A DNA stretch of 64,000 bases, from IMG/VR virus record IMGVR_UViG_3300030102_006934, positions 1 to 64,000 of that record. The stretch is one strand, 5' to 3'. The notes under the pieces are model-generated. The model was not told the origin of the DNA and searched no databases. It saw nothing but the letters and a program-made list of their open reading frames with translations. The position numbers were made by a program, and so were the translations under genes. This document shows positions 1 through 4,706 of this stretch, one piece after another (the first letter of the stretch is position 1; each line of letters begins with the position of its first letter).

Positions 1-246
1 AATGAAGAACAAACATTAGTTTTGGAAAATCAATTAGTAGAAATAGACGGTAATAGAGATAAGTCTTTAATAAGAGATTTTGCAAATAATATGAGGGTTG
101 GTGATGCTCAGGGTCTTAGAGATTATATATCTACTATTGAGTGTGGTATAGACATGAACATTGAAGTTAGGACTCCTGGAGGTGAGTCCGTTCCCATGTT
201 TCTTCCCATTACACCAAGGTTTTTTTGGCCTAACTCCAGAATATAA
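1..246 (+). CDS. Tail assembly chaperone / baseplate-hub assembly protein (T4 gp26-like), 5'-truncated by the window edge
   Basis: Frame is open from base 1 (NEEQTLVLENQ...). C-terminus FANNMRVGDAQGLRDYI...PGGESVPMFLPITPRFFWP resembles gp26-like/TAC C-termini. Lies upstream of the tape measure gene. Confidence 0.6.
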   Translation, partial: NEEQTLVLENQLVEIDGNRDKSLIRDFANNMRVGDAQGLRDYISTIECGIDMNIEVRTPGGESVPMFLPITPRFFWPNSRI

Positions 247-499
247 GTCAGGATTACTTGAAGAAATTTATATATGTATAAAACATCTTGGTATGACGTA
301 TCAAGATGCTTTATCAACACCAACGCACGAAAGAAAATTCTTTATATTAACACTTATTAATGAAAATAACAAACAAAATGAAGAATCTCAAAAGCAAATG
401 GAAAGGCTTAGAAATAAGGGCGCTAAGGGCACTAGGTCTTCAAGAATTGGTGGTGAGCAATTAAAATCAAAAATGAGAAGTGGAGAAATACCTAACTAA
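161..499 (+). CDS. Second tail-chaperone frame (gp51/GT-like), probably reached by frameshift at T7 220-226; first ATG is at 293
   Basis: Protein-like sequence FFGLTPEYKSGLLEEIYICIKHLGMTYQDALSTPTHERKFFILTL starts exactly at the T run, 24 codons before the first ATG. The TTG at 161 gives an implausible N-terminus. Confidence 0.6.
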   Translation: MKLGLLEVSPFPCFFPLHQGFFGLTPEYKSGLLEEIYICIKHLGMTYQDALSTPTHERKFFILTLINENNKQNEESQKQMERLRNKGAKGTRSSRIGGEQLKSKMRSGEIPN

Positions 500-524
500 T
501 TAAACTTGTTAGGTATTTTTTTTT
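488..524 (+). terminator. Intrinsic terminator after the chaperone genes
   Basis: ATACCTAAC (488-496) pairs with GTTAGGTAT (508-516), followed by a T run to 524. Confidence 0.65.
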
Positions 525-530
525 ATTCTA

Positions 531-548
531 TATATTTATAATAAAAGA
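531..548 (+). promoter_or_regulatory. Putative late-promoter motif TATTTATA
   Basis: TATATTTATAATAAAAGA is identical over 18 bp to 4983-5000; both copies lie just upstream of virion-type genes. Confidence 0.55.
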
Positions 549-556
549 ATATATCT

Positions 557-2089
557 ATGAAATTAGTTATTACTGAATCACAATATAATAGGGTTTTTAA
601 CAAAATTAAAACTAAATTAGTTATCACTGAAAGTCAATATAATAAAATATTGTTGGAAAGTAATATGACTAAAACTATTAGTAAGATAGAAGAGGGTGAT
701 GCAATTAAGTTAATTGATAAGAGTAATAATGAATTATTTTTTAAAGTTTTAGAGGCTTTTAGTGGAAAAATAATCATGATTAACTGCAATGATGGAGTTA
801 TGAAGAATAACTTTTATTACATGGGTAGTGATAGTTTAATCAATAATAGTTTGAAAGTTAAATTTAGACATTTAAAAAATATAAAGGATAGTAGTAACCT
901 AGAAGGTATTAAGTCTGAAATTGACAGTTGGGCTAAATCAACTTTTAAGAACATAAAGTCATTTGAAGTTTTTGAAGGTGCTGGTAAAGATTTAAATTGT
1001 AATTTGGGTTCTAAATTAAAACCTAAATTTAATGTTAATCCAGAAACTGGTGTTATTGAGGACCCTGATAGTGGTAATGAACCTGATAATGAAGAAGAAG
1101 GTAGAATAGAAGATTATAAGAATGACTTTTTAAGTGAAGTTGGTAAATCTAATAGGGGTGAGTCATATAATATGGAATTTAAGGACGGTGGATACCTTAA
1201 TTTAATTGTCGTTAATAAAGGCGCTGGAGTTATTTCTTTTGAAATTAATGGTTCTTCTACTGGAAATGAAGGTGAAAGGTATCAAGAACTTATTGGTGAT
1301 TTAATTGAATTAAAATTACACCCAGATGAGCTAGAGGTTAAAGTTAATACTGTTAATAATAAAAATACTGGAAAACCAAATTATAATTTAGATTATTTAA
1401 ATGTTAAAGTAAAAAGATATTTAGGTGGTTCAGAAGAAGATGAAGATAAATCAAAGTCAGAAAAGATGATTATTCACGGTGTTGATAATTATGTTTCAAG
1501 TAAACTTAAAAAAGATTTAGAAAATAAAGAATCTGAAGAACTAAGTGATGAAGAATTAGAAGACCAAATAAAAAACTATACAAAAAATGATAAGATTCTT
1601 AGAAAAGCTTTATGGAACAAACCTAATTGGATTCTTGATTTACTTAGGATAAGTAAGGAGAGGGGTATTTTACCAGCTGATGATAGAATTAGTAGGTGGT
1701 ATGATAGAGCTAAAAAATATAGAAAGATTAATAGAGAATTTAAATTTAACACTAAAAAAACTTTTGAATTTACTCAATTTAGTGTCACTAATAAAGATAT
1801 TTCAAAATTACCAATGCAAGAAAATAAGAAGTATGTTGGGTTGGTTAGAAAAAAAGGTACAGATGAAATTTATCCTAGAATATCCACTAATTTCGATATA
1901 GATATAAAGACTAATGAATTTCTAAAATATAATATATTCATAACTAATTTAATTGAAGATAATGATAGATTTAAAATTTATGAGATTAAATTAAAATATA
2001 GAGACGAAAACTCCAAAAAATATACTGATGTTGGTACTGGTAAAGTACTAATAGATAATAGTAATAAAAAAGAAGATAAAAAAGATTAA
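557..2089 (+). CDS. Hypothetical protein, probable virion/head-associated, with duplicated N-terminal KLVITESQYN motif
   Basis: 510-aa ORF; KLVITESQYN at aa 2-11 and 20-29; acidic patches; late-type motif upstream. Confidence 0.75.
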   Translation: MKLVITESQYNRVFNKIKTKLVITESQYNKILLESNMTKTISKIEEGDAIKLIDKSNNELFFKVLEAFSGKIIMINCNDGVMKNNFYYMGSDSLINNSLKVKFRHLKNIKDSSNLEGIKSEIDSWAKSTFKNIKSFEVFEGAGKDLNCNLGSKLKPKFNVNPETGVIEDPDSGNEPDNEEEGRIEDYKNDFLSEVGKSNRGESYNMEFKDGGYLNLIVVNKGAGVISFEINGSSTGNEGERYQELIGDLIELKLHPDELEVKVNTVNNKNTGKPNYNLDYLNVKVKRYLGGSEEDEDKSKSEKMIIHGVDNYVSSKLKKDLENKESEELSDEELEDQIKNYTKNDKILRKALWNKPNWILDLLRISKERGILPADDRISRWYDRAKKYRKINREFKFNTKKTFEFTQFSVTNKDISKLPMQENKKYVGLVRKKGTDEIYPRISTNFDIDIKTNEFLKYNIFITNLIEDNDRFKIYEIKLKYRDENSKKYTDVGTGKVLIDNSNKKEDKKD

Positions 2090-2108
2090 TCCAAAATAGT
2101 TTATTTAA

Positions 2109-4706
2109 ATGGCTGATGATTTTGATAAATATAATGAAATGTTTGGCGAAGCCGCTAGGAATTTAGACAAAATACGTAAGGGTTCTAAAGAGGTAGAAAA
2201 AAGTATTAGTGCTTGGTATAAAGCATCAAGAGATATTGCTGAAACTCAGAAAGATATAGCTAATATTGAGAATCAGATAGAGGCTACTAAAAAAGAATTA
2301 TCAACTTTAGATGAATTAAGAAAGAAAGATGCTGCTAAATTAACCGAACAAGAAAAGAAAACATTAAGAGTATTAACAGAGCAAGAAAAATACATTAAAG
2401 GTAGATTAAAATACCTTGAAAGAGAAAATAAAGAGAAGAGAGAAGGGTTAAACAATCTAAAAGAGTCAGTTAAGGAGGCTAATAAATTAAAATCTATAGC
2501 TAGGTCAACTGGAAGCTTTGTTAAAAAGTGGGGTTGGGATAAACTAAAATCATACGGGATATTTGATATGGATAAAGCCATACGTAATGCATCTCGTAGT
2601 ATGGCTCTTGGTAATAATCAATTTGAATCTTTTTCTAAAAATTTATCAACAGCTGCGGATAGCACTGTAATGATGGGTGTTAATGTAACTCAGTTAGCTA
2701 AAATGCAACAGGGTTATAGTAAAGAAATTGGTAGAAGTGTTAGGCTTACACAAGGAGGACTTAAAGCTATGGCTGGATTGGCTGAAGGTACTGGACTTGG
2801 TGAACAATTCGCAATAGGTATGGCTTCAGCAATGGATAACTTTGGAGTTGGGGCTGAAGCTAGTGCTGATTTGGTTGAAAAGACTATGAATATTTCTGGT
2901 CAGATGGGTGTTAATGGACAGGCCGCTGCACAAGCATTACAAAAGAATTTAAAATTAGCCCAAAGATATAACTTTAAGGGTGGTGTTAAGGCTTTAGGTA
3001 AGATGTCTGCTGATGCAGTTAGGCTTAAATTAGACATGGATGGTATTGCTGGATTAGCCGATAAAGTTTTTAGACCAGAAGGGGCAATAGAAATGGCCGC
3101 ACAATTATCAGTAATGGGTGGAGAGTTCGCAAAACTAGGTGACCCTATGACACTTATGTTTAAGGCTAGAAATGACTTTGAGGGCTTTGCTAAAGATATT
3201 GGTAAGGCTACGTCTGAATTTGTTGAGTTTAATAAAGAGACGGGCTCTTTTGAGGTGATGGGTGGTCTTGCTAGAGATAGGATGAGAGAGTTATCTAAAA
3301 TTACTGGTATTAGTGTTGATAAGATGCAAGAGATGGCGGTTCAACAAAAGAAATTGGAAACTATTGGTGGTATAACACCAGTTAATTTTGAAGAAAAGGA
3401 TAAAGAATTTCTGTCTAGTATAGCCGAGTACAGTGAAGATAAAAAGGGGTTCACTATTAATTTAGGTGGTCAAGAAAAATTAATTAGTCAATTAAGGGCT
3501 AGTGATTTAGAGTCTATCAGGAGTAAAGAACAAACACTTGAAGAAAGAGCTGAAGCTTCTAGAAGTTTTGATGAAACTATTAAGGATTTAATGATGTCGC
3601 TTAAACAAATACTATTACCTGTAGCTCAAGGACTTAAGAAGTTTGTTGGTGACCCATTAATTAAACTACAAAAACAATGGAGAGATGCTGGGTTTTATGA
3701 TAGCTTAAAATCTTTTGCTAAAAGTGCAATTTCTTTAGCTGGTAGTATAGCTAAATTTATTATAGAAAATCCAATTAAGTCATTAATTGGTGTTTTAGGT
3801 GGTTGGGCAGCACTGAAAGCTGCTACTTGGATATTCAACGGAAGAATGCTTAGATTAGGATTTAACATGGGTGGACCTATGGGTGGACCTATGGGTGGTA
3901 TGGGTCCTGGAGGTGTCGTTGGTGGTGGTGGTGTAGGTGCAAGTGGTTTATTTAATACTAGAGCCACTGGTGCTGGTAGTGCAATGAGTAGAGCGGGTAT
4001 GAGTAGAATGGCTATGGTTGGTAAAAACTTTAGAGGTGCGGCTGGTTCTGCTGGTGCTATTGGTGGTGGTATTTTAGCCGCTGGGTTTGCGGGTTATAAT
4101 GAATATCAAGAGAATAAAGCAATGGGTCTAGATGGCGCAGAAAATGCTGGTAGAACCGCTACTAAAGCTATTAGTGCTGGTCTAGGTGCTTGGGGTGGAG
4201 CTGCTGCTGGAGCTGCAATCGGTAGTGTTGTCCCTGTTATCGGTACTGTTATTGGTGGGCTTATAGGTGGGGCTATTGGGGCTTATGGTGGTGGTTCGTT
4301 AGGTGAATCTATAGGTGACGCTGTTTATGGTAATGAAAGAGAGAATGCTGGTGGAAGTATGGGTTATAGTAGACTGCCAATGAACGATGGTATAATAGAA
4401 TTTAACCCTAAAGATAAATTTGCTACTATAAGTAATGTTGGTATGGGTGGTGGTATCCTTGCAGCATCAACAAGTCAAAATCAATTAAATACATTAGTTG
4501 ATAACGCCAATTCTAACGGTATTGTAAATCATAAATTTGATAAAATAGATATAAACCTTAATTTTAAGGGTAATATAAATGAATCAACAGCTAAGGAATT
4601 TCTAGATGTTCCTGGTATGAGTGAAGCACTAACAACCGCAATAAACGAACAAATAGCTGGTTCACAAAATCAAAATAAACCATCACCACAACCATTTTCG
4701 GCTTAA
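2109..4706 (+). CDS. Tail tape measure protein
   Basis: 865 aa. N-terminal coiled coil, Ala/Gly/Met-rich helical core, and a Gly-zipper hydrophobic segment (GAWGGAAAGAAIGSVVPVIGTVIGGLIGGAIG). Sits between the chaperone and baseplate genes. Confidence 0.85.
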   Translation: MADDFDKYNEMFGEAARNLDKIRKGSKEVEKSISAWYKASRDIAETQKDIANIENQIEATKKELSTLDELRKKDAAKLTEQEKKTLRVLTEQEKYIKGRLKYLERENKEKREGLNNLKESVKEANKLKSIARSTGSFVKKWGWDKLKSYGIFDMDKAIRNASRSMALGNNQFESFSKNLSTAADSTVMMGVNVTQLAKMQQGYSKEIGRSVRLTQGGLKAMAGLAEGTGLGEQFAIGMASAMDNFGVGAEASADLVEKTMNISGQMGVNGQAAAQALQKNLKLAQRYNFKGGVKALGKMSADAVRLKLDMDGIAGLADKVFRPEGAIEMAAQLSVMGGEFAKLGDPMTLMFKARNDFEGFAKDIGKATSEFVEFNKETGSFEVMGGLARDRMRELSKITGISVDKMQEMAVQQKKLETIGGITPVNFEEKDKEFLSSIAEYSEDKKGFTINLGGQEKLISQLRASDLESIRSKEQTLEERAEASRSFDETIKDLMMSLKQILLPVAQGLKKFVGDPLIKLQKQWRDAGFYDSLKSFAKSAISLAGSIAKFIIENPIKSLIGVLGGWAALKAATWIFNGRMLRLGFNMGGPMGGPMGGMGPGGVVGGGGVGASGLFNTRATGAGSAMSRAGMSRMAMVGKNFRGAAGSAGAIGGGILAAGFAGYNEYQENKAMGLDGAENAGRTATKAISAGLGAWGGAAAGAAIGSVVPVIGTVIGGLIGGAIGAYGGGSLGESIGDAVYGNERENAGGSMGYSRLPMNDGIIEFNPKDKFATISNVGMGGGILAASTSQNQLNTLVDNANSNGIVNHKFDKIDINLNFKGNINESTAKEFLDVPGMSEALTTAINEQIAGSQNQNKPSPQPFSA

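Follow-up and report, generated by a model that had tools for sequence, protein, structure and literature searches.

The window analysed here, a 64-kb stretch (64,000 nt) at the start of a 380,343-bp IMG/VR virus record with a GC content of 31%, begins inside a gene. The missing upstream part of this gene is provided by the IMG/VR contig L001, which is 100% identical to window positions 1-2583 and places the gene behind those for the tail sheath and the tail tube (Table 1). The gene comprises a long zero-frame ORF, whose 3' end lies inside the window, and a second, overlapping ORF in the +1 frame. Downstream follow a 510-aa ORF, for which neither a Pfam nor a PHROG match was found, the tape-measure protein and a further ORF encoding a 1483-aa protein. 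The order sheath, tube, frameshifted gene and tape measure was found in L001, the Microcystis phage Mel-JY01, immuto, LIS04, L086, L089 and L091.

Table 1. Features of the locus. Coordinates refer to the window unless the contig L001 is named.
Feature	Coordinates	Strand	Remarks
Tail sheath gene	L001:1262-4108		
Tail tube gene	L001:4279-4767		
Frameshifted gene (putative), both frames	L001:4905-6285		
Zero-frame ORF, full length, 375 codons	L001:4905-6032		3' end inside the window
Zero-frame ORF, 3' end, 81 codons	1..246	+	PF12322 / PHROG 150 'baseplate hub' (T4 gp26/gp51-like); cut by contig start
Shift site and conserved context, TTT TTT TGG CCT AAC	220..234	+	Invariant in 67 contexts
+1-frame ORF, 92 codons and stop	221..499	+	TAA at 497-499; FFGLTPEYKSGLLEEIY...GEIPN; helical Gp51_C-like domain; no usable start codon ahead of the conserved part
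510-aa ORF separating the frameshifted and tape-measure genes	557..2089	+	Function unknown
Tail length tape-measure protein, 865 aa	2109..4706	+	phrog_167, E 7.8e-18
Strong hairpin followed by a U run	482..524	+	Overlaps the stop codon of the +1 ORF; intrinsic terminator-like

The same 380-kb record contains a second copy of the frameshift locus (copy B), with the site TTT CTT TGG, and resembles a scaffold of two related phages; the frameshift finding is unaffected by this. It is doubtful that the window forms part of one 380-kb genome, and the record may be chimeric. When the contig end was joined to its start, a second +1 break seemed to appear at an A7 run; this candidate was dropped. The identical contig L001 continues upstream with different DNA, which shows that the record does not close into a circle at that junction.

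Two reading frames at the proposed slip site

A run of seven T occupies positions 220-226, with CCAAGG on its 5' side and GGCCTAAC on its 3' side. Frame 1 reads ACA CCA AGG TTT TTT TGG CCT AAC TCC AGA ATA TAA, corresponding to ITPRFFWPNSRI, and ends at the stop codon at 244-246. Frame 2 reads TTT TTT GGC CTA ACT CCA GAA TAT AAG (FFGLTPEYK...) across the same run and remains open up to the end of the +1 ORF. The first ATG of this +1 frame is found at 293-295, a TTG at 161 is not conserved, and the -1 frame meets a TAA at 231-233. An earlier note, made from the sequence alone, had described the T7 run, the two frames, the stop codon and the ATG at 293 in this way, and all of these held when the sequence was read again.

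With 121 T7 runs on the + strand of this 31% GC genome, such a run alone is not rare, and the significance of the site rests on its conservation. The first two codons read after the Phe codons in the +1 frame are both rare in the genome, accounting for 5% of its Gly codons (GGC) and 16% of its Leu codons (CTA). The T7 was found without gaps in Logan contigs from two DNA runs of different studies and in one metatranscriptome contig spanning 111-399; Logan contigs lose rare variants, and RNA libraries may include DNA.

Conservation of the two-frame layout

With the +1-frame peptide as query, at least 400 related loci were obtained from IMG/VR, of which 80 were kept. The two-frame layout is present in all 80 of these loci, which had been found with the C-terminal peptide. 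Their zero frame comprises 240-450 open codons and is shut 6 or 8 codons past the run, and their +1 frame is shut 1-36 codons upstream and stays open for 62-97 codons downstream. In many loci the +1 frame opens only 1-9 codons ahead of the run. Among the 67 distinct contexts contained in the 80 loci, site positions 1-12, TTT(T/C)TTTGGCCT, are invariant and position 13 is a purine throughout; positions 16 and 19, which are wobble positions in the +1 frame, vary freely. A perfect T7 is kept in 66 of the 67 contexts of the window's clade.

This first search was partly seeded on FFGLTPEY. It was repeated with patterns from the N-terminal domain only, which are independent of the site, and yielded 76 distinct contexts; 70 of the 75 usable ones share the +1 layout. 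The commonest class, TTT TTT CGN CCN, accounts for 59 of the 76 contexts and the class of the window, TTT TTT TGG CCT, for 10, both with the C-terminal domain in the +1 frame, as is also seen for a single context with TTC TTT CGC (L142). Three contexts carry a T9 with the C-terminal domain in the -1 frame and one carries a T8 with the domain in frame; one more is unclear or belongs to another class, and one runs off its locus. Runs of T9 or T8 were seen in L088, L126, L130, L139 and L170, and the site TTT CTT TGG in the Flavobacterium phage immuto, in L058 and in copy B. Of the 160 IMG/VR loci retrieved, 150 show the same frame break, which was additionally seen in cultured phage genomes. A tblastn search with the window's own C-terminal part gave no match in 50,697 phage records, and more distant family members used as queries matched Mel-JY01, immuto phages and LR756508. 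The loci come from metagenomes and many of them are mutually related; all of the evidence is comparative.

In the CGN class the zero-frame wobble position is free (CGT, CGG, CGC and CGA), while the +1 residue shifts among V, G, A and D. This indicates that the zero-frame tail FF(W/R)P is selected as protein, and such selection probably means that both products matter. It also follows that the invariant GGCCT of the window's clade may reflect dual coding, with FFWP encoded in frame 0 and FFGL in frame +1, and needs no stimulatory signal; the invariance is not proof of a stimulator.

The upstream part and its paralogues

The upstream part, referred to here as the N part, matches PHROG 150 'baseplate hub' with an E-value of 2e-7. 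Against PF12322 (T4_baseplate, T4 gp26/gp51), the phage's own full-length N part, taken from L001, reaches 17.5 bits (E 0.0035), which is below the curated cut-off of 24.5 bits, and the 81 N-part residues inside the window give no PF12322 match. A PF12322 match was obtained for 48 of the 58 aligned relatives of the N part, with a best E-value of 6.5e-19. The predicted structure of the N part (pLDDT 88) aligns with an Atlas PF12322 cluster at a TM score of 0.75, and hhalign relates the N part to the gp51 family with an E-value of 4.5e-4. By its relatives, by profiles and by predicted structure, the N part belongs to PF12322.

T4 gp26 and gp51 each match PF12322 from end to end; gp26 ends with the domain, and gp51 runs 48 residues further. 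Like T4, the lineages L085 and L091 encode the short and the long form as two genes: a short PF12322/PHROG 150 paralogue ending ...FFYPN/T.. is positioned directly upstream of an in-frame fused paralogue, and the pair sits downstream of the tube gene. Two-gene lineages of this kind are expected if the frameshift exists to make both forms. Judged by homology, the short product most likely corresponds to T4 gp26 and the long product to full-length T4 gp51.

The downstream part as a probable extension

FFGLTPEY, residues 1-8 of the +1 ORF, are its most conserved residues and lie at the site itself, so that conservation begins 24 codons upstream of the ATG at 293. An upstream ATG in the +1 frame is missing in 62 of the 67 contexts, ATG, GTG and TTG are all missing there in 44, and in 10 not a single ATG occurs in the +1 ORF. 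A search of protein libraries with the downstream part, the C part, found 95 homologues, 94 of which are orphan ORFs of 47-117 aa that begin wherever the gene caller found a start codon. The only other homologue, P0086 (293 aa), is a fusion of N and C part in one frame, and P0190 is a second natural in-frame fusion.

Structure prediction gives the C part as a small helical domain (pLDDT 84). In hhalign, its family (A6) aligns with gp51 of Prochlorococcus phage P-HM1, a protein of 53 aa, with 91% probability and an E-value of 1.1e-6, and this gp51 in turn aligns with the T4 gp51 family at residues 211-250 with 95% probability and an E-value of 3e-8. The direct match between the C part and the T4 gp51 family is correctly placed but weak (E 0.003), and the link to T4 gp51 therefore passes through one intermediate, the cyanophage gp51. 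By way of this intermediate, the +1-frame domain is homologous to the C-terminal module of gp51. In BFVD the C part superimposes on P-HM1 Gp51 with a TM score of 0.77 by target, with an E-value that is not significant, and fold searches of the C domain in BFVD and the PDB gave no significant match. PF28602 is a newer Pfam label on gp51 homologues, named Gp51_C in the Atlas, and the Atlas record of the C part begins with the Met encoded at 293. To DUF6760 the C part shows weak similarity: 16 of 55 members match, all with E-values of at least 3.3e-5, and the window's own C part reaches 17.3 bits where the cut-off is 27 bits. When the fusion was aligned jointly in MAFFT with N and C pieces kept separate (A4), the C pieces were misplaced, and this alignment was excluded from folding.

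A putative +1 ribosomal frameshift

What the comparisons establish is the two-frame layout, the site together with its variants, the homologies, the syntenic gene order and the existence of natural fusions. On this comparative evidence, without protein or reporter data, the locus is likely to be a real recoding site at which one gene gives two products by a ribosomal +1 shift; the ribosomal nature of the shift, its direction and its efficiency are inferred. In this model most ribosomes would read frame 1 through TTT TTT TGG CCT AAC up to the stop at 244-246, giving a short PF12322 (T4 gp26-like) protein that ends FFWPN.... In a fraction of ribosomes, the peptidyl-tRNA-Phe on UUU at 223-225, possibly also that at 220-222, would re-pair one base in the 3' direction (UUU to UUU/UUC) while UGG (226-228) waits in the A site. 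These ribosomes would resume at GGC (227-229) and add the 90-residue helical Gp51_C-like domain, and the long product would carry the junction ...ITPRFF-GLTPEYK....

In agreement with such a slip, re-pairing in the P site is possible in every +1 locus, on UUU_U, UUU_C or CUU_U. TTC TTT CGC, as in L142, leaves only the re-pairing of UUU to UUC on the second Phe codon, and TTT CTT TGG allows either UUU to UUC or CUU to UUU. The broken T runs (TTTCTTT, TTC TTT CGC and T6-C) argue against slippage of RNA polymerase and for slippage of the ribosome. A UUU followed by a pyrimidine is known as a +1-prone context in E. coli.

Stimulatory elements were looked for on both sides of the site. Downstream, an alignment of 33 relatives yielded no consensus structure, and the 60 nt following the site fold with a mean z of -0.47 in the 67 contexts. 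The earlier note had pointed to a weak hairpin just behind the run, formed by CCTAACT (229-235) and AGTCAGG (246-252). The two arms are present, with one mismatch, and the hairpin failed as a feature: the MFE fold lacks it, its region in the window has z = -0.07, and it shows neither conservation nor stability. Upstream, no conserved Shine-Dalgarno-like element was found at a distance of 3 nt in the window's clade. The window itself has an AAGG 3 nt ahead of the P-site codon, at a position that is not conserved in its clade, and in the T6-CGN clade a GGGG located 8 nt upstream is conserved. The A-site codon, UGG or any CGN, is a sense codon and neither the stop nor the rare codon of classic +1 sites. 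Neither the sense codons nor any structure found thus explains why the ribosome should pause at UGG or CGN. In a study of pheL, +1 shifting could be stimulated by a nascent peptide whose penultimate residue is Phe (PMC3082878). By analogy, an effect of the nascent peptide may be relevant here, since FF and the residues preceding it are conserved.

Alternative explanations

The same fusion could arise if RNA polymerase dropped one U, or added two, on the T7 run, so that an edited mRNA encodes the long protein. The uninterrupted T7 of the window, kept in all but one of the contexts of its clade, and the T9 or T8 runs of a few relatives speak for such transcriptional slippage, and slippage on homopolymers is documented in AT-rich genomes. 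It would call for a long uninterrupted run that is conserved as a homopolymer, and across the relatives this is not met. In 59 of the 76 contexts only T6 followed by C is present with the same two-frame layout, and the layout is also retained where the run is broken, by TTTCTTT on three independent occasions and by TTC TTT C once. Moreover, the only RNA-library contig over the site reads T7 without a gap. We consider transcriptional slippage unlikely as the general explanation; a minor contribution of the polymerase in the window's perfect-T7 clade cannot be excluded. Still less favoured is a ribosomal -2 shift on the T run, which would lead to the same frame with one extra Phe (...PRFFFGL...). 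Both T7 and T6C would let the tRNA-Phe on the second UUU re-pair two bases back, and shifts by -2 are known in some phage tail chaperone genes (Mu, according to the earlier note). In TTC TTT CGC and TTT CTT TGG, however, such re-pairing would hit TCT or TTC with the wrong tRNA, whereas re-pairing at +1 stays cognate in these same variants (L142; immuto, L058 and copy B). In addition, two hydrophobic residues, and not three, precede G/x-L in the natural fusions and in the family alignment.

A reading without any recoding, in which a separate small gene starts at the ATG at 293 or the TTG at 161 as annotated by gene callers, is very unlikely. It is supported by the databases, which carry the orphan ORF (the 94 short ORFs and the Atlas record from the Met of 293), and by the gp51 of T4-like cyanophages, which has its own ATG with a GAGG upstream. 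Against it stand the peak of conservation 24 codons ahead of the ATG at 293, the lack of an earlier start codon in most relatives, the 10 of 67 ORFs without any ATG and the existence of in-frame fusions. A sequencing or assembly indel in one continuous gene, or a decaying pseudogene, is all but ruled out. Homopolymers are error-prone, and L170 (T8) is in frame, unlike its nearest relatives (T9), which would fit an indel. The frame break nevertheless recurs in 150 of 160 IMG/VR loci, in the genomes of cultured phages and in copy B of this record, the T7 is read alike in contigs from different studies, and purifying selection on both frames speaks against a pseudogene.

Most claims of the earlier note are borne out by these comparisons. 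Its main proposal, a shift into the +1 frame that joins a gp26-like to a gp51-like part, is supported by the conserved layout, and the two variants of it that it had allowed for, slippage of RNA polymerase and a -2 shift, are disfavoured by the variants of the site. It had suggested looking in homologues for the T run and for coding conservation upstream of the ATG at 293; both are retained, and the conservation starts at the T run. Of the observations that it named as able to refute it, a normal ATG-initiated gp51-like gene without a conserved T run in homologues is not borne out, with most of them lacking an upstream start codon, and an explanation of the T7 as a sequencing indel is contradicted by independent contigs and by the relatives.

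Comparison with known systems

The arrangement resembles the chaperone frameshift of the lambda gpG/gpGT type (Levin 1993; Xu, Hendrix & Duda 2004; summarised in PMC5009743). As in lambda, the gene lies between the tube (major tail) and tape-measure genes, its products would share their N-terminal part, and the arrangement is conserved despite low sequence similarity. In contrast to the -1 shift on an X_XXY_YYZ heptamer in lambda, the shift proposed here is +1 on UUU_UUY. The requirements of a -1 heptamer are not fulfilled, as the target frame is +1 and UGG is unable to re-pair at -1; a minority of relatives, those with T9, use the -1 frame. Further differences are the family, PF12322 and not Phage_TAC, and the 510-aa ORF that separates the gene from the tape-measure gene.

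No kinship with tail chaperones was detected at the level of sequence or fold. A Pfam search of the N part gave no match to a chaperone family (Phage_TAC_*), a Foldseek search of the N domain against the PDB returned nothing at E <= 0.001, and its fold searches in the Swiss-Prot AFDB and by a wide VIA-align comparison gave no significant match. The only chaperone seen for this domain was the YqbN/XkdN-like 3klu, with a Z of 5.3, which is at noise level. What is met of the features of a G/GT system, on comparative evidence only, is the location between tube and tape measure, with one extra ORF, and the overlapping ORFs with a conserved shift. The chaperone context upstream of the tape-measure gene that the earlier note had assumed thus held in part, with the 510-aa ORF intervening, and so did the kinship to chaperones, which is confined to genome position and two-product logic and does not extend to membership by sequence or fold. 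By analogy of position and of this logic, the protein, a member of the gp26/gp51 family, probably acts like G/GT; its function in assembly is inferred.

With T4 the locus shares the PF12322 N part, and the C part is similar to the 48-residue extension that gp51 has and gp26 lacks. The two T4 proteins, gp26 (baseplate hub) and gp51 (hub assembly catalyst), differ from the case described here in that they are separate, divergently transcribed paralogues without a frameshift. In T4-like cyanophages such as P-HM1, a PF12322 ORF ending ..DFFV precedes a Gp51_C ORF of 53 aa that is read in a different frame, with a T6-C run at the FF codons. The frame of this small ORF, however, is -1, it begins at an ATG of its own and counts as an independent gene in the annotation, and the heptamer U_UUU_UUC would support -1, not +1.

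The proposed slip itself is comparable to those at the CUU UGA C of prfB (RF2), the CCC UGA of Listeria phage PSA and pheL, where a P-site tRNA likewise re-pairs in the 3' direction, and the CUU UGG C of immuto, L058 and copy B is one base off the RF2 site. The site described here differs from the RF2 type by its sense codon in the A site, by the absence of a conserved SD-like stimulator 3 nt upstream and by the absence of an autoregulatory logic.

Implications for gp26 and gp51

Textbooks cite the tail-chaperone frameshift as an example of recoding. T4 and its relatives have been regarded as the exception, and what gp26 and gp51 of T4 do during hub assembly has remained vague. According to a review from 2016 in NAR, G-T frameshift chaperones are conserved in long-tailed phages "except T4" (PMC5009743). 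We regard it as likely that the locus represents a new variant of the G/GT-type tail-chaperone frameshift, in the +1 direction and in the gp26/gp51 family, with efficiency and function being inferred. A link between gp26/gp51 and frameshifting was not found in the open-access literature that was searched, nor was anything relevant on DUF6760 and PF12322; most subscription journals lie outside this search, which makes it weak evidence for novelty.

A bolder reading, which at present could as well be wrong as right, is that PF12322 and Gp51_C constitute the G/GT-type chaperone system that had long been missing for T4-like phages and their relatives with contractile tails, with the FF codons as an ancient recoding hotspot. 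The hotspot would be used for a +1 shift (UUU_UUY before UGG or CGN) in the form commonest among environmental phages and for a -1 shift in others (T9; possibly U_UUU_UUC in cyanophages), and would have been replaced by gene duplication in T4 (gp26 and gp51), L085 and L091. If true, this would explain the status of T4 as an exception and would give gp26 and gp51 a concrete role. The locus and its hundreds of environmental relatives in any case lead to a testable hypothesis for the two T4 proteins, and they offer a large natural series of +1 sites, with UUU_UUY before a sense codon, for studies of the mechanism.

For annotation, the consequence is that small "hypothetical" or "gp51" ORFs should be joined to the "baseplate hub" genes upstream of them. 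In the records of Mel-JY01, immuto, LIS04 and P-HM1 no frameshift is annotated, and the small ORF is either listed separately or not annotated.

The hairpin at the 3' end of the +1 ORF (Table 1) has a folding energy of -15.4 kcal/mol (z = -4.8). It was not caught by the consensus scan because its loop comprises 11 nt, and 0 of 200 shuffled sequences fold equally well.

Variant shift sites among relatives

In the clade of relatives with TTT TTT CGN at the shift site, 55 of 57 contexts have GGG as the glycine codon 8 nt upstream of the T run (loci L093-L172, from the N-domain-pattern search; positions -8 to -5, counted from the T run). As the wobble base of this codon falls where the zero frame alone is coding, the conserved GGGG is not explained by coding, and may act as a Shine-Dalgarno-like stimulator. 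In a minority lineage (L088, L126, L130, L139), nine T occur in GAT TTT TTT TTC CCA and the -1 frame holds the C domain. L170, a member of this lineage with eight T, has the C domain in frame; it represents a natural fusion, a genuine polymorphism or an error in the homopolymer.

T4-like cyanophages and Listeria phage LIS04

In T4-like cyanophages, gp51 was found in the -1 frame relative to gp26 in 54/54 distinct contexts, drawn from the Prochlorococcus phage P-HM1 locus (L092:8677-9557) and from L177-L256, and in these 54 the gp51 frame is open already 5' of the gp26 stop codon. The sequence GAT TTT TTC, which contains the heptamer U_UUU_UUC, is present at the gp26 C terminus in all but one (53/54). 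In these phages a -1 shift that joins gp26 and gp51 into one product may operate, although gp51 has its own ATG, with GAGG upstream.

The PF12322 'baseplate hub' gene of Listeria phage LIS04 (Thornevirus; E 5e-24) ends with GAG TTT TTT AGT..TAA. In the +1 frame, 5' of the tape-measure gene, there follow about 80 residues, in which a ...FER..LY..LL motif can be recognised. This ORF suggests that the module and the +1 arrangement could reach as far as SP15-like phages of Firmicutes, a possibility rather than an established extension.

Region between the +1 ORF and the tape-measure gene

In the window, a hairpin with a U run on its 3' side overlaps the +1-ORF stop codon. It lies between the chaperone-like gene and the following ORF, and resembles an intrinsic terminator or attenuator. 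That following ORF, of 510 aa, has no match in Pfam or PHROG, and the majority of relatives lack such a gene at this place.

A complete second copy of the module (copy B) is present in the same record, outside the window. Here a 535-aa ORF occupies the equivalent position, with no similarity to the 510-aa ORF at E <= 1e-10.

Features of the window and of the 380,343-bp record (G000 C1), with the LIS04 locus
Feature	Location	Details
Hairpin	window 482-524	15-bp stem, then U run; -15.4 kcal/mol, z = -4.8
510-aa ORF	window 557-2089	inserted between frameshifted gene and tape-measure gene
Copy B module	G000 C1:225,942-226,917	
Copy B N part		257 aa; C-terminal end ..GPDFLWPEFGV
Copy B shift site		TTT CTT TGG CCT GAG
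Copy B Gp51_C-like ORF		+1 frame
3' of copy B module		in order: 535-aa ORF, 803-aa tape-measure-like protein, 1768-aa protein
Collinear regions	window 2,000-64,000, on to about 83 kb; G000 229-308 kb	~40 ORF pairs
Scaffold gap	90,703-90,712	10 N
tRNA genes	G000 C1:317,985-321,616 and 350,953-351,025	eight predicted (ARAGORN)
Repeated short A-rich string	G000 C1:377,300-380,343 (far end of record)	ending ...AAAACAAAGATGAGT; 5' of several genes
LIS04 locus	L083:3680-3945	

Composition of the record

The collinear ORF pairs of the two regions share 25-72% amino-acid identity, and the scaffold gap lies between these regions. CheckV scores the 380-kb record at 100%. Two diverged structural modules within a single phage would be extraordinary; the record probably represents two related phages joined as a scaffold or chimera, rather than one jumbo phage.

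The predicted tRNA set comprises Glu, Asp, Ser, Met, Leu-TAA, Arg-TCT, Ala and Gly-TCC; tRNA-Phe, tRNA-Trp and tRNA Gly-GCC, which act at the shift site, are not among these eight ARAGORN predictions. The A-rich string translates as recurring TKTKMS / NQNKDE, and its repetition before several genes suggests that it might be a recurrent promoter or translation-initiation motif.
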